64,000 nucleotides of DNA from Adineta vaga (taxonomy: Eukaryota > Animalia > Rotifera), in NCBI GenBank assembly GCA_021613535.1, contig CP075495.1, positions 11,780,001 through 11,844,000 of the forward strand, read 5' to 3'. A program made the position numbers and the translations under genes. The notes beneath the pieces were generated by a model. That model worked only from the letters and a program-made list of their open reading frames with translations. It was not told the DNA's origin and ran no database searches. This document shows positions 37,001 to 55,686 of the stretch, piece after piece. How positions within the stretch are numbered: the first letter of the stretch is position 1; each line of letters begins with the position of its first letter.

Positions 37001-40000
37001 ATAATTGCTCATAGGTTGGCCCAATAATCCACTTACATCCAATGTTGATATTGTCATTACTGGTTCATCTTCAGTCAACGTTTTATTACCAAATGATGGT
37101 GGATCACTTGGACCTCGTGTAATCGGTGTTTTAGGTGGTCTTGATCTTCATGGTATTTCACGAAATGTTTCATGGACACGTCTTGCTACAACAGCATCTG
37201 CAGGTCAAACTTCAATTACATTAAGTGAACCAGTCGATTGGGTTGCTGGTGATGAAATTATTCTTACAACAACTGATACTCGAATTGAACATATAGAACG
37301 AAATACTGTCGTCAGTGTTAGTGGTGCAGTAGTAACATTGAAGAATGCTCTTGCTTATACACATATTGTCATCGATAATGTATTTCCAAATGGTCAAATC
37401 TATCATGTTGCTGGTGCTGTAGGTTTGTTAACAAGAAATGTTCGTGTCATCAATCGAAGTCCAGCATCAGAAAAAATGGGTTTCCGTGTACTTGTGACAG
37501 ATTATGCTACCGACGTTTACAATGAAGCAGGAAATGAGTATATCTATACATATTATAAAGGTTATGCACGTTTGTCCAACGCACAATTTATTGGTTTCGG
37601 TCAATTTGTTGATGCTCCCAATGAAGATAAACGTGAAGCTATTCATATATATAATCTTGGTGATTGGAATGCATCACGACCAACCTATATCGATTCATGT
37701 TCATTTGATACTGGTTATTATTCAGCGTACGTATCTATGAGAAAGATTTTGATTTACTTATGTTCGTTTTCTCTTCATATAGAATTGGTGTATGGGATTC
37801 CAATGGTGTTCCAGTTACAAATAATGTTATTTATCGAACATATGAATCAGCTATTGTTGTTACAGGAAAGAATAATATTATTCAGAAAAATCTTGTTACA
37901 AATGTCTATTGGTCTGGTGAAGCACAACCAGAATATGCTGCATTTAATATCAACAATGATGGTGCTATTATGTCACGAGATGCAACTAGTGTTATTATGA
38001 GAGTAAATTGATTGAGTTCATATAAATCGAACAATTCACTAATCAATTTATTTTAGGATAATTTGGTATCTGGTGCACAACGTCAAGCTTATCGTATTCA
38101 AGGAAATGCATGTCCAGGAGTAGTTTTACCAAATGATACTGTCAACGATTATGACAATAATGAAGCTCATTCAGTTATGGCTGGTGTTAACATGTGGCCA
38201 AATGATAAAGGTTTCGATTATGATACAGGTAAGTGACGAAATGAAAGATGATATTCATTGTAATATGAAATAAAAATTCTTCCTTTTTAGATTGTGTATT
38301 AGTCAAAGGTTTCAAGTAAGTTAAAAAATATTTTCTTTTCAATTGTTTACAATAAATGTTATTCTTTTAATAGTACTTACAAAGCTTGGTACTATGGTTT
38401 ATATCTCAATACTAAACATAATATTATTGTTGATTCATGTAAAATAGCCGATAGTAGTGTTGGTATTTTCACACTTGTTCTTGGTCCTGCATGTAATTAT
38501 CTTTGATAATAAAAAAATGAATGCAATTATGTCATTATTACTTGTTTTGTCTTTTTTCTTTTCTAGCAACATCACATGTATTCAAAAACAGTTCAGTCAT
38601 CATCCGTAATTCAATAGTTATCGGTGCTATTACACCAAACGATTGTAGCGATACTCCAGATCGTGATACATTGAGCGCAGCCAACAGTAATACAGCAGTT
38701 CCCCGTGTATCAGCGTCATCATCGGAAGGTAGTCCAGGTGGACGAACAGGCATATCATTTCCATACTTCACACGTGACAATATGATTCCACGTCATCCAT
38801 ATACAAGTATTGGTGCTTATCCATGCAGTAAGTTATTAAATCGAATAATCATCATTTTCAAGCATACAATTTCTATTTGTAGTTGGTGGTTTAATGACCG
38901 TGACTAATGTCACGTTTGGTTATTTCAATGATGTATGTTCACGTCGTGATATTGCTATTCAAGTTTCACAAAATAATGATGATGGTCAACATCCAGTTAC
39001 AACCAATCGATTATCAGTTTATAATACACCATCATCAAATTTAGTTTTTAATGGACGACCAAATCTTGATCTTGTCAATCCAAGTGATTGTGTTGGTAAG
39101 AAATCAACGATTTCTAATAATATGCATTGTTTTATTTAATGCTTACTCATTTGAATTCGATTCTTTTTAGATATGGATTGTGATGGTTTGAAAAAGAGTT
39201 TACTTATTGATACTGACGGTAGCTTCTTCGGTCAACCATCAACTGTCTTCTCTCAATCTGAATATCTATGGGGTAATTTCTTTAATGTTGTGTACCGGTA
39301 TATATTCCTATATCTTCCTCATCCTATTCAGGTAATCAAGCTCATGGCATTGGTGACTATCGTATTCCAAAAGTAGCCTTGTCGAATCTTACCGGACAAA
39401 TGATCAATATCAATGTTCAATATCCAAATCGTGGTATTGGTCATACACCATCATGTACTTACCAATCATCATATCAAATGTATTTATGTCCAAATATTGT
39501 CAATTATCGCATGTTAAATATTGAAAGTATGGATGCTGATACAGAAACACGACGACTTTCACCAGTGGCTGTGTTTTCTGATACTGGTTATATTGATCTT
39601 ATCAATGGTCCACAAGATCATGGTTGGTGCAATGGTTATACATGTCAAAAACGTGTTTCAACATTTATGTCAATTGTTCAAGGAGGACATCATTATGATA
39701 TTTATCTATCAAGTACAACACCAGATCATATGCGTTTCCGTTTACTTAATGCTGACTCAACAATCCTTACATCATTAGCTCTCTATTATGATTCATTACA
39801 ACAAGTTGATGTTTATGCAAATGACATTTATGTTTCACCAACAAATCGTGATAATAGTTATCAATATCTGATGTTAAAAGATCAACCATCCGGCATTACT
39901 TTTTCGTCTGCATCTGGTACAAATTATTTCAATAGGTAAAGAGATTTGTAGTTTTGTTTTCTATATACATTGCTTTCTTTTCAAAAATTTAGAACAACAC

Positions 40001-42155
40001 AAATGGCATCATTTCTAATCGATGGCATCACTGTTATCGATTTGAAGATTTCTGAACTCATCATTCTTACATTTGGTTTACCAGCTACTACACCATCAGC
40101 ATTCTTTACTACAAATTTAGTCGCCAATTTAGCTAGTTTACTCCGTCTCTGTTGATAAGATTCGACGTGTTAATATCATCTCAGCAAATAATGATACGTA
40201 CGTATTTGAAACATATTATTTTGAGAGTTTTCATGAAAATTTTCTCATATATTTTTTGTAGTCGTGTTCGTCGTCAAGCAGTGAATGTTGCAACAATTAT
40301 GTTACGCGTTGAAATACGTAATGATCCACCTCAAAGTCTATCTGCTGGAAATCAAGTATCATCTGATGAAATTGCCAATATAACTTCCGCTATTATCAAT
40401 GGATTTCAATCAAATGAAACACAACAAGTATGGCAAAATAATCCTTCAACAGGTGGTGTTTTTCCTGTCAGTTTAACTGTCCAAGAACCAAATAGTCGAG
40501 ATGCCGTAGCATTGAGTGTCATTAGTCGTTTAGTATTAATTACTCCACCATCATCATGTCGTTTACAATCTGCATGTGATGTTCAACCAAAACTTGTTGC
40601 TTATGATGCATCAGGAAATGTAATTGATAAATTAGGTTCAATAGATCAACCATGGCAAGTCATTGGCGTTGTTGTTGGTCAATCGGGTATTAATCTTATT
40701 GGTCCAATTGCTAATTATTCTAGTGGACAAACACAATATACAAATTTTGGTATCACAGCAACTGGTTCATATCGTATTGAATTTCGATTCCTTACACCAA
40801 ATGGTGTTAGCAAGTAAGCATCTATTTTGAAAGACACGTTACATGATGATTCGAAAATGATTTCCTTTTCTTTTAGTGCATTTGTTGCTAGTGCTAATCT
40901 TATTGTAACTTCATCATCAGTATCAGTTGGTAACGCAATCTTAGCTGCTAAACAATGTGACGATGTCACTGTCGTTTCTATCAATGAAACATTCAATATT
41001 TCGACTATTATTGTTGATAAAATCTCGAAAATTAAAATCGGAAATATTCAATGGAGTACCTTTGTGTGGTCAGCTACTGTTTCACTCTATACTTCATTAC
41101 AACATAAATGTAATGGAACATTAATTCGAACAGCATCATCAAGAATTATTGTCGATACAACAGCTGGTACAATAACAGCAACAGATCTAGCAATCGATGC
41201 TGTTGGAATGTATATCATCACAGTTGAATTAAGATCATCCGATAATCAATATTTTATTACAATGACATCAAATGGTATACTCGTGAAAAAGACATCGAGT
41301 AAGTGATAAATTATATTTGTTTTGATATGTACAAAATACATTTGTTATTTCAATAGCTGTTCTAAATGTGTATGACGGTTATCCACCATCGAATGTAACA
41401 TTTAAAGGTGATTATGACGCATTGGTAAGCAGCGATCGTCTTGAAATTACACGTGCAGCGATTTATAATTATCTTAAATACAAACTTCGTATACCAATAA
41501 ATAGTGACGTCGTTTTACGAAAAGGTTCGTTAATAAAGAAAAATGCTGTTTCTTTTCGTACGTGATATGCTCTTATTTATTTATAGGCAGTATCATCGCA
41601 GGTTTCAGTTCAAGTGCTCCAAATATCGATGATGCTGTTAATATTCAAGCAGCTGTTCAAAGTTTAACAGGCAGTGGGACAGGAGCTATCGAATCTCTCG
41701 AAGTACAATCAGTAAATATCGAAGGCAAATCGTCTGAAGTTGCATCTACGACAGAGTCGGATAACTCTAAAATTGGAATGATCATTGGTATTGTTGTTGG
41801 CGTTGTTGGTGCTCTCGCTGTTGCAGTTGGTTCAGCATTTGGTATTCACAAATATCACGCAAACAAGAAGGGTCAACGTCTTGTGAATGTGAATGATGAA
41901 GAAGCTTCATTATCAAATAATTCACCAGTACAAAACAATGCTAATACAACTCAACCAAACAATAGCCAGTCAAATGTAACACGTCGTACATCTGTTACAC
42001 CAACCGATGTACCAAAACCAAGTAGTAATGGTCCTCAACCATCATCTGGAAATGGACAACGAGTTCCATCTGCTGCACTTAGTGTTACAACAATTGGATT
42101 AGAAAATAATGCAGCTTCACTAATGCCACCCGTTGAACTCATCAGTTTCAATTAA
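25088..42155 (+). CDS. PKHD1L1: Fibrocystin-L (PKHD1L1-like) giant type I membrane protein, about 49 exons; one frameshift at about 40144
   Basis: Signal peptide; many IPT/TIG repeats; PA14-like domain; cupredoxin-like domain; two G8 domains (WSSPWTWGGDSPPEEG...); beta-helix repeats; family motifs CPTGFNPGEFAVQTCFLGRYGQEIGSDQFG, AGQAFRLGRYPVHFH, VNPSDCVDMDCDGLKK, GPQDHGWCNGYTCQKRVSTF; furin-like RVRR; TM helix at 41772-41846. Confidence 0.93.
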
Positions 42156-47676: not shown

Positions 47677-48786
47677 ATGGATAGAAACAGTTCAACTGAT
47701 TCTACATTATCTTGTTCATTTAATGTTCCATTATTTCTTCGTTATGTAGGCACATTTGTTGTTATATTTGGTTTTCTTGGAAATTTTCTTTCAATATTAG
47801 TCTTTAGTAGAAAAACGTTACGTTCTCGTTCATGTTCAATTTATTTTTTGGCATTAAGTGTTAGTGATGTACATGTTCTTCTTGGTTATACAATTGAAAG
47901 TCTTCTTTTTCATGGTTATAATATTCAATTATTATCAAATTCATTGATGTGTAAATTAATTATTTTTCTAATTTATGCATCAACAGATATATCAAATTAT
48001 CTTTTAACATTCGCCGCTCTCGATCGTTGTATTCTAATTTCAAATTATCCCATGCGTTTTCGTTTTTGTCGAAAATCGACTGCAAAATTAATAATTCTAT
48101 GTGTTATTATTCTATTTAGTTTAATCAATAGTCATTTACTTCTCGGTTTTCATGTTGATGAATCTGGTGCATGTTTACCAATGAATACAGTATACAATTA
48201 TTTTTATACTAATTATTATGATTCCTATATTGATATCATTAAAACCGTTCTTTTACCATTTATTATTATATTTATATGTAATATATTTATTATTTTTAAA
48301 TATACACGACGAACACATTCATTAGTATTCAAAAGTTCGTTGAAAAGAAAGAGTCGTCGACGTCGTGAAAAAGATCGTCAGTTAACATGGTTTCTATTAT
48401 CAACATCAATATTATTTATACTTTTATCATTACCATCGGAAATCAATGATTTCATTCGTTCGTATATGAGTAAAAATTTTGAAAAAATTTATAGTTGTCA
48501 AATGTGGACATGTACAACAATACTCATACTTATCCATCAAATAAATCATGCATCACATTTCTATGTTTATACATTAACTGGACCCATATTTCGAAAAGAA
48601 TTTCAAAAATTAATCTTTTTCTTTCGAAAACAAAGAACAAAAAAACAATCTTTAACCCATTCGAAACAACCATCAATATCATTGAATGTTAATCCACAAG
48701 ATGATGGAGATAGTCAACAAATAAGTAATAATATTATTAATCAAGATGACTCCTCAATTCGTGTAAGTTTTCAACGTAATGTTTAA
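47677..48786 (+). CDS. Class A (rhodopsin-like) GPCR, peptide-receptor-like, single exon
   Basis: Seven hydrophobic segments; GN in TM1, LSVSD in TM2, DRC (DRY equivalent), ECL2 Cys, LP in TM6, HFYVY followed by FRKE helix 8. Confidence 0.92.
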   Translation: MDRNSSTDSTLSCSFNVPLFLRYVGTFVVIFGFLGNFLSILVFSRKTLRSRSCSIYFLALSVSDVHVLLGYTIESLLFHGYNIQLLSNSLMCKLIIFLIYASTDISNYLLTFAALDRCILISNYPMRFRFCRKSTAKLIILCVIILFSLINSHLLLGFHVDESGACLPMNTVYNYFYTNYYDSYIDIIKTVLLPFIIIFICNIFIIFKYTRRTHSLVFKSSLKRKSRRRREKDRQLTWFLLSTSILFILLSLPSEINDFIRSYMSKNFEKIYSCQMWTCTTILILIHQINHASHFYVYTLTGPIFRKEFQKLIFFFRKQRTKKQSLTHSKQPSISLNVNPQDDGDSQQISNNIINQDDSSIRVSFQRNV

Positions 48787-49662: not shown

Positions 49663-52600
49663 TCAACCTATAGAACAACAATTTAATAGTTTAACAAAAT
49701 CATCATGAACTAAAACAAGATTATCGAGTGATAATGGATATAACTTGTCATCCATTGGTTGAAAAAATATCGGTGTCTCATCGAATATATTTAAATGTTC
49801 GGATAATTGATATGCATATGCTCGACGAATATATGAAAGTATTTCAGTTAAATTTAGATTGGATGTTTCACCTAAAAATACATATCTTAATCGAAATGAG
49901 ACTATATACATAAATTTTCATCTTACCAAAATGTAATTGATCAGGATATTTGAATTCTTCTATTGTAAAAGTTTTCAATTGATTTTCAATATGAAATGTT
50001 AAGATGTGAACAATCGCTTCAATGATTGGTCCAATTAATTTGACGAAAAATGTCAATTGAAAGTGATTTTCTTGAAAATGAATCTAAAAATTTCATCAAG
50101 TAAAATCATTCTTTCATCACTTTACTTACTCGATAGATTGGTTTGATTGTTTCAGAAACTTGATTCGAGACATCACTAATCATAATATCATCTTGATCGT
50201 CATCATATTCAACAAATTCGTCTCCCATCAAATCATCATCTTCATCATCGTCACTCCATTCATGATCTGATAGAATAGTATCACGAAAATGCATCGCTTT
50301 TTGAGGAATAAAATCCTAAGAAACAAGTAGTTTTCTTCTGTGGATATATCATTCACGTAGAACAAAGTCAATGCTTACTGTTTGAATATAATTTCTTGTT
50401 TGACAAAGTTGAATTGTTTGTCGAATTATTTGAGATAGATTTAAACATGGACGAATATTTAAATTTTGTTTAGTACCAAATGTAAATAGAAGAAATTTCA
50501 TTTGATTAAACATTTCAAATTCAAAAACATGTGATCTAGTACCAACATGTTGTACTTTGGATACAATTGATAAAGCTGATTAAAAGGAAGAAATAGACAT
50601 CTTTATTGATTTTGATTAAGGATTGAATTACCTGCTAAAATGTCAAGAAAATATTCTTTTCGTATGATTGAGATTAATTGAGATTTAGAATTCTTTTTCA
50701 ATTGATACTGTTGAATATCGTTTAGAGTTATTTCAGCCCATGAATGATTATCAGTAGTAATAAATGGACATGATTTCAACACCATTTGAAGTGTATCGAA
50801 TATCAGATCGATTGATGATAAGGATGACTATCAATACAAAAAATATATGAATGTGCATAGTTCATTATAGAAAGAATAGATATACAAGATTTCTTGGTAT
50901 TTGACATAGTTCAATACAAGCAATGACCGATTGAAAATCAATCTTTGTCTTCACCAACTGATTTGCATCTAAAGAAAAGAATATATATATATATATATAT
51001 ATATATTCATATTCTTTGAAGTGATAGTTTTGATAACTAGAAGCTCTCTTTTATATTATTACTTTTTTTGAAACATGTATTCTATAATATATAGTTTACA
51101 TACCATATACTAGATGTAAAAAGATGCAATCGACAAATCGAAAAACAATATTTTCTTCTTCTTGAGATTTGATTATTTCACATAATTGTTTTTGAATCTT
51201 CATCTTTCTTATGAAGGAGTCAACAAGTTCCTATTCGTTCAATTGAAAAATGGAGAGAAATCTTGTTGAAGTAAAAAACTTAATCTTACTTTGAATAGAA
51301 ATGGTTGACTAAAAGTTAAATATGATTTATATAAACATGTTGGAATGATTAGAATATCTGGTATTGATAAATCTAAAATAACTCAATTAAAATAAAAATT
51401 TCGTAGACTAAAAGAATAGTAAATTACCAAAACGAATTAAATCACATAGAAAAGACATTAAATAGAGATCGGAAGATTTTGGTTGAAAACTTATTGAATA
51501 ATCAAATAGAAAAATCATCGGTCCATTTCGATGGCATGTTTTTAAACATCGATAAATATACTAATATGAAAGAATATTAAAACTATTCATTAAAAATCTT
51601 TGCTTACACAGAAGAGATCTTTTCGATTCATATCTAATTCGGATAAATCAATGAAACCTAGACAATTGAGCATTATTCGTTCAAATATTGAACTCGTTTG
51701 AAATGAACGATTTGAAAAGATTTTCGTTGTTAATGGCCAATTAAAGATGGTTATTAAATGACGAAACATCCAAAATATTTCACGAAAATTCTTCTCTTCA
51801 TCGATAAAACATACGAAAATTGGAGCAATAGTATTTGTCTGAAAAAAAACGAAGATTTGATTTTGATTCGAAAACTCATTCGATTACTTGAAACAAATAT
51901 CGAAATGTTTTCATCGGTTGATTATGAACTTGAATTGGTAATGAAAGACTTCGTAGTTTTCGATAAGTATAATACATTTGAAATCTTAAATAAATATCTT
52001 TATTTCGAATATTTACAATCAATTCTTACCTTAGAATCAGATGATAAAGAAAATTCGGAAAAATTGATTTCCAAAAAGATTTTTTTATTAACATATTTTC
52101 ATCCATATGTGATAGTAATGAAATGGAGATGTCTTCGGAAAAACTCGAACATGTTTATTATACTTTGAATGATTCTCATACCTGCATTATTTTGTTTACT
52201 AAAATATAAATCTATGTCATGTCAATATTATTCTTCTCTTCACTTACAAATCAGATAATTGACCACGTTCATCACATTGTTTACTTAACGTTTTGTTCCA
52301 ATAATAAACTAATGGAGAAACCGCTTGTCTAAATATAACCATTTACACACATCACTGAGAAATCAAGCTTATTACCCAGATAAACGAAAATCAAATAGAC
52401 TTTTATCTCCTGATATATATGTATCAATCCATCGATAGATTGTCTAGAAACTTTTTGAATGAGAATAGATGTTCAAGACAAAAATCTCTCTTACATAACT
52501 TTTGACTGTACATATTTGACAACAACGAAAATTTGTCGATAAACGTTGAGCATACCGATGAAGATCCTGTTCAATCATATCATTTTTATAGATATTTACC

Positions 52601-52758
52601 AATCGACAAATACGCTAATGAAAATAAAAATTCAATTTAATTCTCTTTTGCTTTTATTAAATGTATAGATTATTCACTTCCGTTGAAACACTAGTATCAC
52701 TAGGTCGTATCATCTGAGATTCATTATACAATTGACGCCAATTAATCATTTCTTTCAT
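49663..52758 (-). CDS. Mitochondrial glycerol-3-phosphate acyltransferase (GPAM/GPAT1-2/Minotaur)-like protein with degenerate catalytic motifs, multi-exon
   Basis: Spliced translation has collinear GPAM-like landmarks: RCCQICT, IQVHNQPM, RKDL, IPDILIIP, RPCLNLSQII, and acidic WSDDDEDDD followed by LTFFVKLIGPIIEA. HxxxxD and FxEGTRS are absent at the expected positions. Confidence 0.72.
50981..51006. repeat. (AT)13 microsatellite inside an intron of the GPAM-like gene
   Basis: Direct reading of the sequence. Confidence 0.9.
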
Positions 52759-53187: not shown

Positions 53188-55686
53188 ATGGCTACTCCAG
53201 TAGACGCAACAACAGAAAAACTTGATGAATGTTCCATTAGTAAATAAAATTTGAAATTAGTTTGTATATATTTGTGTTCATTGAATTTAGAAGGGACAAT
53301 TGTTTATACATCGGAAAAAAATGGTAGCGATGAAAATGGTGACGGATCAGAAAGTAAACCATTTAAAACGCCCTTACAAGTTTGTTTTTGAATAGAAAAA
53401 TAGCAGACATTTTAGTTCATAATTTTTAGGCATATCGTCAACATGGTGATAATGTAACAGTTTATGTTGATGGTAAAGATGAAACACAAGTATGAATAAT
53501 TTATTATTATTATTATTATTAGATTAACTAGATATATATGATAAATCTAGGGCAAATGGGAATTATTATCGAAAGCTCAATCGAAAAAAGTGAAAACTCG
53601 TTATGAAGAAGAAAAGAAAAAAGAAAAAAATAAAGCAGAACAAGAAGTAAGCTTTATCAACAGTGAACTGATAATATTATTTTGATTTATTTATAGGAAA
53701 AAGATCGAGTACAACGAGAAGCCAATCTCGCAAAAGCTCGAGAAATAACCATCACTGAAGATTCATCATTACCTAAACCGAAATTGGTATGTTCGAAAGT
53801 AATCATTCAACAGGAATAATATTTCGAAATTCTATCTAGGTTAAAATTAAAGCATTGAAAAGTCAACATAATGAACGCGTAAAAGTTTTCGGTTGGGTTC
53901 ATCGTATTCGACGACAAGGTTGGTTGTCGGAATAATAAACATTATTTTTACAGACTGCTAATTTTTCTCTTTAGGCAAAAATTTGATGTTCGTTATTTTA
54001 CGAGACGGTACTGGTTTCTTACAATGTGTTCTGTCTGACAAATTAGTAAGAAAATAAATCTATCCATTTTCATAAACGATCTTATTTTGAAATAGTGTCA
54101 AACCTACGATTCAGTTTGTTTATCAACTGAAGCAACTATTTCTGTTACTGGTGTTGTACGTCCTGTACTTGAAGGTCAAACTGCACCAGATAACCAAGAA
54201 CTTACAGCTGATTATTTTGAAGTTATTGGACATTCACCACCAGGTGGTGCTGATACATTAATTAACGAAGTTTGTTAAGATAATTAGAAAAATAGTTCAA
54301 TTATTAAATCTTGTTTTCTAATGTATTAGGAATCTCATCCTGATGTTCAATTAGATAACCGACATATGTTGATTCGAGGAGAAAACGTATGTTAATGGAT
54401 TTGCTTTGTTTTCTAATGAAATCACAATGAAAAGAAATCATTTTATTTAGACATCGAAAATTTTACGTCTTCGTTCCATTGTTACTCAATGTTTTCGTGA
54501 TCATTACTTTGATCGAGGTTATTATGAAGTAAGATATCATGTAAAGATTTTGTTTTATTAATTGATTGTCTTTTTCGTTTTTCTTAGACATTTCCACCAA
54601 CTCTTGTTCAAACTCAAGTTGAAGGTGGTTCCACTCTGTTTGGTCTTAATTATTTTGGAGAAGCAGCATATTTAACGCAATCATCACAACTTTATCTTGA
54701 AACAGCATGTCCAGCATTAGGTGATGTTTTCTGTATTGCTCAATCCTATCGAGCTGAACAATCCCGTACTCGTCGTCATTTAGCTGAGTAAGAAGAAAAC
54801 ATATTAGAGAATCTATTTTAAGTAGAAACGTTTTTTGTAGATATACACACGTAGAAGCCGAATGTCCATTTATTTCTTTTGATGATCTATTAGATCGAAT
54901 TGAAGATCTTGTTGTTGATGTTGTTGATCGTGTATTGAAACATCCGGAAGCTCATCTCTTGTTTGAAGTTCACCCAGTATGAAAAACAAAAATTCTTGAA
55001 AATAAAATTTATCGAAAAAAAACCATGTTCTACTTTTTCTACTTGCAGGGATTCAAAGCACCAAAAAAACCATTCAGACGTATGAATTATAGTGATGGTA
55101 TTGAATGGTTAAAAGAAAATGGCATTAAAAACGAAGATACTGGTAAATTTTATGAATTCGGTGAAGATATACCTGAAATGCCTGAAAGAAAAATGACCGA
55201 TGCAATCAATGAACCTATTTTATTCTGTCGATTTCCAGCAGAAATCAAATCATTTTATATGCAACGTGATGCAAAAGATGCACGTTTGACAGAATCAGTA
55301 AATATTCATATTTTTTTCTGTTTCTATTATCTGTATTATCGCGTGATTTTTGTCAGGTTGATGTTTTAATGCCCGGTGTTGGTGAAATTGTTGGTGGAAG
55401 TATGAGGATGACAAGCTTTGAAGATTTATCTGAAAGTTTTCGAAAGAATGGTCTTAAAACGGAACCATACTATTGGTATTTAGATCAAGTAAGTTCTCCT
55501 GTTTTCGATTGATTTTCAAGATGAATACTAAATGACATATTTTTCTTCATTTAGCGTAAATATGGAACATTTCCTCATGGCGGTTATGGTCTTGGTCTTG
55601 ATCGTTTCATGACATGGCTAACAAACCGTCATCATATTCGTGATGTTTGTTTCTATCCACGATTTATTGGTCGATGTAGACCATAA
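53188..55686 (+). CDS. NARS1: Cytoplasmic asparaginyl-tRNA synthetase, multi-exon
   Basis: N-terminal [16 protein letters not shown]; [30 protein letters not shown]; QVEGGSTLF; [21 protein letters not shown]; [12 protein letters not shown]; [10 protein letters not shown] stop. Confidence 0.97.

Follow-up and report, generated by a model that had tools for sequence, protein, structure and literature searches.

The minus strand at positions 49663 to 52758 of a 64,000-nucleotide stretch of the Adineta vaga genome (contig CP075495.1; the whole stretch is referred to here as the window) raises the question of whether a glycerol-3-phosphate acyltransferase (GPAT) could be kept as a gene after losing its catalytic residues, and what such a protein may do. 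A first-pass annotation, made from the sequence alone, had described the locus as a catalytically dead relative of GPAM, GPAT2 and Minotaur, retained beside a working GPAM as a candidate dedicated scaffold in the pathway of Piwi-interacting RNAs (piRNAs). Our analysis favours, with a rough probability of 70%, a functional single-copy gene that encodes a non-catalytic pseudoenzyme of about 720 residues with a GPAT fold, derived from a GPAT1-like ancestor.

The first step was to establish whether a gene is present. Many stop-free segments of 47–97 codons, those of 69–97 codons recurring among them, occurred on the minus strand from 52.8 to 49.6 kb. Such segments far exceed chance, since about 8% of random codons are expected to be stops at 27% G+C, and the G+C content of the region was 25–30%. 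With two confident A. vaga genes as the training set, most of the segments later assigned to exons scored positive codon-usage log-odds. The exons were separated by GT-AG introns of 45–63 nucleotides (nt), plus one of 136 nt, mostly with GTAAG-type donors and T-rich acceptors ending in AG. The resulting model had exactly the bounds given in the first-pass annotation. Its database counterpart, the A. vaga protein I4U23_009449 (701 amino acids, "hypothetical"), mapped exactly onto the window, and the intact multi-exon frame that had been claimed was borne out by these exons, by this mapping and by an exon pattern common to the orthologs. The NCBI model of I4U23_009449 skips exon 6 (52132-52030) and instead extends exon 7 up to 52024. 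The true A. vaga protein likely has 722 residues rather than 701, because the skipped 103-nt exon is conserved in all other bdelloid orthologs. The gene was laid out as follows.

52758..49663, minus strand: whole gene, 17 exons and 722 codons, ATG at 52758, stop at 49665-49663; one exon corrected against orthologs
52678..52758, minus strand: exon 1 (81 nt), beginning MKEMINWRQLYNESQ...; N-terminus kept in all full-length orthologs
52495..52614, minus strand: exon 2 (120 nt), with the conserved cysteine motif RCCQxCTxKSY
52376..52443, minus strand: exon 3 (68 nt), ortholog-supported model
52248..52328, minus strand: exon 4 (81 nt), donor GTAAGT at 52247
52182..52198, minus strand: exon 5, a 17-nt micro-exon also found in the A. 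steineri and Rotaria models
52030..52132, minus strand: exon 6 (103 nt), ISISLLSHMDENMLIKKSFWKSIFPNFLYHLILR, translation conserved in other bdelloid orthologs
51888..51984, minus strand: exon 7 (97 nt), FQMYYTYRK..., ortholog-supported model
51608..51838, minus strand: exon 8 (231 nt), first half of the putative pseudo-acyltransferase core, with strand 1 and the former motif I, the invariant FRHLITIFNWPLTTKIF and the former motif II
51428..51560, minus strand: exon 9 (133 nt), with the helix YIYRCLKTCHRNG and the strand of the former motif III
51290..51372, minus strand: exon 10 (83 nt), with the strand of the former motif IV followed by FSQPFLFK
51104..51230, minus strand: exon 11 (127 nt), ortholog-supported model
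50886..50968, minus strand: exon 12 (83 nt), ortholog-supported model
50632..50827, minus strand: exon 13 (196 nt), ortholog-supported model
50379..50575, minus strand: exon 14 (197 nt), ortholog-supported model
50130..50315, minus strand: exon 15 (186 nt), with the conserved acidic tract SDHEWSDD (about 50264-50187)
49927..50083, minus strand: exon 16 (157 nt), containing the helix FFVKLIGPIIEAIVHIL (about 50050-50000)
49666..49871, minus strand: exon 17 (206 nt), last residues ...FVKLLNCCSIG before the stop at 49665-49663

Two features of the gene region can be recorded beside this model. Intron 11 (about 50969-51103) is the unusually long one of 136 nt and carries a (TA)n-like microsatellite, one frame of which translates as YIYIYIYI. 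The longest open reading frame (ORF) of the region is a 136-codon ATG ORF at 51758-52168 on the plus strand, antisense to exons 6-8; it has a codon score of about zero and no homolog, and is probably a by-product of the composition of the coding strand.

Homology searches, which used single exons or database proteins as queries, revealed that the gene is shared among bdelloids. Searched against 1.8 billion representative proteins, the exon at 51838-51608 retrieved a 663-amino-acid Rotaria protein (71% identity) and two fragments. A word search with that Rotaria protein then gave eight full-length or near-full-length bdelloid proteins, I4U23_009449 among them. All eight are named "uncharacterized" in the database, and none of the eight carries a Pfam domain. 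The Adineta and Rotaria orthologs reached 63–69% identity with the A. vaga sequence in the family alignment (59–65% by BLASTP), and a copy on a 49%-GC bdelloid-like contig from an ENA assembly was only about 35–50% identical. No relatives outside bdelloids could be found by a word search with the family profile. The exon pattern and exon lengths (16–17 exons; 81/120/68/81/17/106/97/228/133/83/124/83/~200/197/~186/157/206 nt) recur in the orthologs of five other assemblies, covering A. steineri, A. ricciae (two copies), R. sordida and R. socialis, and at least seven assemblies keep the frame intact. Within the A. vaga genome (100.8 Mb, six contigs), the family profile matched one locus, and the gene is single-copy there. 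A candidate for a degenerate ohnolog on contig C5 was rejected as noise; the haploid A. vaga assembly shows no second copy on another chromosome.

The ratio of non-synonymous to synonymous divergence (dN/dS, or omega), which the first-pass annotation had proposed as a check, was below 1 in all pairs among the sampled bdelloid orthologs. Computed exon by exon with the Nei-Gojobori method (NG86), it amounted to 0.22–0.46 in 15 of 15 pairs and was alike in the N-terminal, core, middle and C-terminal parts of the protein. The two A. ricciae copies, located on two contigs with the same neighbouring genes, differed by a dS of 0.20 and a dN of 0.043 (omega 0.22). The locus is therefore a real, intact and conserved gene under purifying selection.

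The second step concerned the catalytic motifs. The four strings quoted in the first-pass annotation were present where it had put them, and the loss of motifs I, II and III, which it had read in A. vaga, extended to all orthologs. The motif-bearing segments are as follows.

51808-51779, minus strand: former motif I, FIDEEKNFRE; a Phe codon (51808-51806) stands at the catalytic His of VHRSHID and a Lys codon (51793-51791) at the Asp
51661-51644, minus strand: former motif II, LGFIDL, where human GPAT1 has LGGFFIRR; Gly, Phe and Ile are kept and both Arg are lost
51512-51489, minus strand: former motif III, FLFDYSIS, where human GPAT1 has FLEGTRSR; none of E, G, T and R remains, and IFL lies at the GPAT1 offset
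51364-51341, minus strand: strand of the former motif IV, IPDILIIP, identical to human GPAT1; orthologs read IPDxxxIP, without the ISYD found next in GPAT1
51290..51313, minus strand: FSQPFLFK, running on as ELVDS in exon 11 and resembling FAQPFSLKE of human GPAT1

HX4D is invariant in active GPATs (PMC3708527). In the family alignments, no ortholog had it, or even a His, at the motif I position, and none kept the motif II arginines or the motif III EGTR. The former motif I was the most variable stretch of the core, reading IDEEKNF, VNEDNSF, IYNENSF, IHEDNNL and ANRNCSV in different orthologs, and the orthologs read FD(Y/N/H/E)ST at motif III. With all of these residues replaced throughout the bdelloid orthologs, the general-base His and the Asp of HX4D among them, canonical acyl transfer by the protein is very unlikely.

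The strings were compared with human GPAT1 by eye, in an ungapped register counted from a TN that precedes motif I in both proteins; the comparison carries no formal alignment statistic. The human protein (8e4y chain, residues 159-347) carries VHRSHIDY, GGFFIRR, FLEGTRS and IPDILIIP, and FVCFIDEEKNF of the rotifer falls opposite human LPVHRSHIDY. Identities between rotifer and human, numbered from TN, were TN at 1-2, F at 22, F at 25, H at 27, I at 29, IFL at 93-95, S at 106 and IPDILIIP at 125-132. Further islands common to human GPAT1 follow in the same order with small shifts, namely LG.F.I, RKD(V/L) and F(A/S)QPF..KE. The spacing between motif I and motif IV is 121 residues, as in GPAT1, and 118 in the A. 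vaga GNPAT. The bdelloid protein differs from human GPAT1 in overall length (about 720 versus about 830 residues) and in missing about 39 residues after motif IV, ISYD among them; FSQPFLFK accordingly lies about 39 residues nearer to motif IV than its human counterpart.

The third step was the fold. An AlphaFold2 model of the full-length protein had a poor mean predicted local distance difference test score (pLDDT) of 38, and a model of the domain at residues 136-359, built from 10 sequences, reached a pLDDT of 56 and a predicted template modelling score (pTM) of 0.56; no templates were used in either. The domain model demonstrated a strand-helix alternation matching the GPAT core element by element. 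An exhaustive VIA-align comparison against 48,161 PDB chains placed human GPAT1 first (8e50_A, Z 7.4, 198 residues aligned) and the plastid GPAT of squash second (1iuq_A, Z 6.6, 185 aligned); the remainder were unrelated folds with Z of 5.7 or less and, in all but one case, shorter spans. When the Foldseek top 1000 were re-aligned, 8e4y again stood out (Z 8.6, root-mean-square deviation (rmsd) 4.5, 194 of 224 residues aligned, 16% identity), the runner-up reached Z 5.8 with 132 aligned, and PatA, an enzyme of the same fold, was also listed. For the full-length model, Foldseek ranked 8e4y third, with the highest probability (0.99), the highest identity (18%) and the lowest rmsd of the list. In the ESM Atlas shape search, the rows with the top template modelling (TM) scores were PF01553 clusters, at 0.52–0.55. 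It is very unlikely that chance would fill both of the first two ranks among 48,161 chains with GPATs. On the strength of the models, an acyltransferase fold of the central domain appears highly probable. The core (about residues 170-320) would keep the alternating strand-helix fold of GPATs and be closest to human mitochondrial GPAT1 (8E4Y, 8E50), its best structural match, with the four motif-bearing strands in the same order and spacing.

The fourth step asked what else of this family the genome contains. PF19277 had one match genome-wide, at C2:13.68 Mb, which belongs to GNPAT/DHAPAT (C2:13682068-13684306), the ortholog of animal DHAPAT and 98% identical to A. vaga I4U23_010014. Searching the genome with a GNPAT profile found nothing besides this locus. 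Fourteen of the 15 PF01553 loci other than GNPAT were inspected (C3:6861971 was left out); where motif I was shown, it read NH(R/Q/K)xxxD, the AGPAT/LPGAT type, and a GPAT3/4-type gene at C6:9.65 Mb had NHT at motif I and FPEGT at motif III. No active GPAM-type gene was found in the A. vaga genome, and none of the inspected PF01553 loci besides GNPAT reads HRS[HY]xD; this absence is strong but not absolute, because small exons could escape six-frame searches. The GNPAT gene is the only other gene of the GPAT/GNPAT/PlsB subfamily in the genome and shares the chromosome of the locus, at a distance of 1.85 Mb. It differs from the locus in its intact HRSYMDF, GAFFIRR and FIEGTRS, in its strong matches to PF01553 and PF19277 and in its few exons, one of them 1.5 kb long, and no similarity between the two could be detected by hhalign or, beyond chance level at the locus, by tblastn of the genome's own GNPAT against the window.

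The separate active GPAM that the first-pass annotation expected elsewhere in the genome was therefore not recovered, the only PF19277 gene being GNPAT/DHAPAT. Its description of the locus as a paralog beside a working GPAM did not hold either, since only GNPAT, GPAT3/4-type and AGPAT-type genes were found. With no active GPAM-type gene found, the gene is more likely the single, converted copy of the GPAT1/2 lineage, and probably the sole descendant of that lineage rather than an extra paralog. Descent from the GPAT1/2 (GPAM/Minotaur) lineage would be the most likely history, given that an active GPAM-type gene was undetected and that GNPAT, the GPAT3/4-type gene and several of AGPAT type remain intact; catalysis would then have been lost before the sampled bdelloid lineages split. 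GPAT1/2 ancestry of the gene is favoured with some reserve.

As to what the protein may do, we infer that it acts by binding rather than by catalysis. The core contains a stretch that is nearly invariant across orthologs, LFWxFRHLITxFNWPxTTKIF...FER...LGFxDLS, and this most invariant part of the protein is predicted to line the former substrate pocket. The near-invariance of the stretch at that place suggests a retained ligand- or partner-binding surface.

Several results weigh against this interpretation. Ten stop-to-stop pieces of the locus and the full-length orthologs gave no Pfam match to PF01553 (E <= 10) or PF19277, and the locus was absent among the genome-wide PF01553 matches. All PDB sequences, human GPAT1 among them, were searched by phmmer and by profile hmmsearch, with single exons, a full-length ortholog, residues 165-335 of I4U23_009449 and the family profile as queries; no GPAT appeared at E <= 10, and the matches were limited to a faint one to SYF1 and others at chance level. 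Comparison of the family with an 18-sequence GNPAT alignment by hhalign gave only non-significant local pairings (best P 0.04–0.24). These were collinear, pairing IPDILIIPTCLY with GNPAT motif IV, FSQPFLFKELV with FSEPIYVHDAY, and the helix FFVKLIGPIIEAIV with the C-terminal helix of GNPAT, the exon 16 helix being the sole segment paired with that helix (P = 0.18, non-significant); hhalign nevertheless placed IPDILIIPT..YKSY slightly better on GNPAT motif I than on motif IV. On the structural side, Foldseek with the domain model returned no GPAT in the top 50, where generic alpha/beta folds, P-loop-like ones first, were found. The models are of low confidence because the alignment holds only 8–10 sequences, and Z scores of 7–8.6 are rated "middling" by the tool, best values of 7–8 being common for models without true relatives. 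A hydrophobic segment above 1.6 (Kyte-Doolittle, 19-residue window) was not kept across the three orthologs scanned. GPAT1 itself is monotopic, and the lack of a conserved transmembrane segment is uninformative on localisation. Finally, the choice of GPAM over GNPAT depends on short islands of sequence and is not backed statistically. IPDILIIP, FxQPFxxKE and the spacing from motif I to motif IV agree with GPAT1 and not with the A. vaga GNPAT, and GPAT1 is the best match among solved structures, which include no GNPAT. The GPAT identity given in the first-pass annotation therefore stands in its structural part, the match to GPAT1, and finds no significant match by sequence methods; the GPAM landmark strings gain their significance from the structural evidence for the fold.

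One alternative holds that the gene is not derived from a GPAT at all but is a bdelloid-specific orphan with a generic three-layer alpha/beta domain, in which the resemblance to GPATs, IPDILIIP included, is coincidental. The negative sequence searches, the P-loop-like folds that Foldseek places first, the commonness of best Z scores of 7–8 and the ambiguous hhalign placement of IPDILIIPT..YKSY would all suit it. In addition, an ESM Atlas feature search gave no GPAT lead and returned only unrelated helical scaffold proteins, all below 0.85. This alternative is nevertheless unlikely, as the two GPATs at the head of the 48,161 chains also had the longest aligned spans, GPAT1 stood 2.8 Z units above the next row at 16% identity, and the PF01553 clusters were the best TM rows in an independent library. 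Moreover, an exact 8-mer and IFL occur at the GPAT1 spacing from TN, and all islands are collinear.

Another alternative is the function proposed by the first-pass annotation, a dedicated piRNA-pathway scaffold resembling Minotaur or GPAT2 that would keep only the non-enzymatic role, at the mitochondrial or endoplasmic reticulum surface. The statements on Minotaur made there agree with the literature: catalytic-site mutants of Minotaur rescue piRNA biogenesis, which is thus supported despite a mutated active site (PMC3708527). Minotaur (CG5508) and mouse GPAT2 are members of the GPAT1/2 lineage whose piRNA function is independent of the active site (PMC3708527), and the bdelloid protein, with its GPAT1-like predicted fold, its missing catalytic residues and a gene under constraint, would be a natural "active-site-free" version of them. 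Zebrafish GPAT2, with a natural His-to-Arg change in motif I, provides a precedent for a catalytically dead member of the GPAT1/2 family kept by selection (PMC3708527). It differs from the bdelloid protein in that a point change occurred in a canonical GPAT, whereas in the bdelloid protein all four motifs are degenerate and unrecognisable to the family models. Minotaur and GPAT2 likewise retain recognisable acyltransferase and GPAT_C domains, in contrast to the bdelloid protein, whose divergence from GPAT1/2 is so large that the surfaces of Minotaur or GPAT2 need not persist.

The argument for a piRNA function is purely by analogy, and no membrane anchor was conserved across the orthologs scanned. 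Furthermore, a 2025 survey reported that A. vaga has no counterpart of Zucchini, the partner of Minotaur, and that its piRNAs have no ping-pong signature (PMC12256650). In our search of the genome with PLDc_2, the two best matches (C4:14.36 Mb and C6:8.84 Mb) were inspected and proved to be PLD1/2-like HKD exons, not Zucchini-like. Two weaker single-exon matches (C2:1022922-1023308 and C6:13341579-13341977), in open frames of 422–437 codons, were left out of that inspection, and a Zucchini-like gene was neither found nor excluded by the search. A dedicated piRNA scaffold appears improbable.

A broader version is that bdelloids dropped mitochondrial-type GPAT catalysis altogether and kept their sole GPAT1/2-lineage gene for a non-enzymatic job, such as small-RNA biogenesis or an organelle-surface scaffold. 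We regard it as improbable.

It could also be proposed that the GPAT fold was re-tooled for a different reaction with new catalytic residues, for which H195, D232, D265, S267 and R194 (A. vaga numbering) would be candidates. The core holds a cluster of many invariant polar residues, and the constraint is uniform over the protein; the invariant residues fit binding equally well, and we know of no precedent for catalysis without HX4D in a GPAT fold. A re-tooled enzyme is very unlikely.

The remaining proposal, a decaying pseudogene or a diverged copy of SYF1/XAB2 with HAT repeats, has next to no probability, since faint matches of one exon (Pfam PF23231, E 0.17; PDB 5mqf_M, E 0.43–1.3) and a true SYF1 gene about 270 kb away on the same chromosome face a frame intact in at least seven assemblies, dN/dS well below 1, a match covering only 40 residues of a stretch predicted as strand-helix-strand and not all-helical, and tblastn with the genome's SYF1 that finds nothing at that exon and few matches elsewhere in the locus, at chance level (E 4.5–9). 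The pseudogene was excluded by the intact frame together with the dN/dS values, and the SYF1/XAB2 identity was rejected, that one match being all that was found of the tandem HAT repeats (PF23231/PF23233) expected across the protein. The presence of SYF1/XAB2 (C2:11556794-11559198) and GNPAT/DHAPAT on the chromosome of the locus, 0.27 Mb and 1.85 Mb away, was treated as a coincidence.

The surroundings of the gene could also be compared among bdelloids. The neighbouring genes in the window are as follows.

47677-48786, plus strand: single-exon seven-transmembrane receptor (G-protein-coupled receptor), neighbour gene
about 53250-55400, plus strand: asparaginyl-tRNA synthetase (AsnRS), neighbour gene
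62700 onward, plus strand: large protein kinase, a further neighbour

At the retrieved loci, the 49%-GC bdelloid-like contig included, AsnRS lies upstream in divergent orientation and the receptor gene lies downstream in convergent orientation; the exception is R. sordida, whose contig stops upstream of the gene. The order of the neighbours listed above is shared by the Adineta loci and R. socialis and, in part, by the 49%-GC contig. The non-synonymous divergence of the gene was about twice that of the neighbouring AsnRS and about equal to that of the neighbouring receptor gene, in a tblastx comparison that is rough, as its dN/dS values are inflated by read-through into introns, and that served only for the neighbouring genes. 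Farther off in the window, a run of long ORFs at 37005-42155 on the plus strand resembles a large secreted or membrane glycoprotein, with repeats that look like a beta-helix, a stalk rich in Ser/Thr and a single hydrophobic anchor, and is unrelated to the gene.

Under the preferred reading, a functional gene for a non-catalytic protein of the GPAT fold, the product is a strongly diverged GPAT-family pseudoenzyme that is at present unannotated in public databases. The family is listed there as uncharacterised and free of domains, and its description as a pseudoenzyme of the GPAT1 fold would be its first annotation. The reading also implies that bdelloids are without an active GPAM-type enzyme, and the initiation of glycerolipid synthesis would then fall to the intact GPAT3/4-type and GNPAT enzymes. 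If the sole GPAT1/2-lineage gene was indeed kept for a non-enzymatic job, it would be a natural separation-of-function allele, in which the moonlighting role of GPAT1/2 could be studied without a background of lipid synthesis. The activity-independent role of GPAT1/2 in the piRNA pathway is poorly understood, and a lineage with a selected non-catalytic shell would be a clean system for the role of that shell, in a group of animals whose control of transposons is of wide interest.

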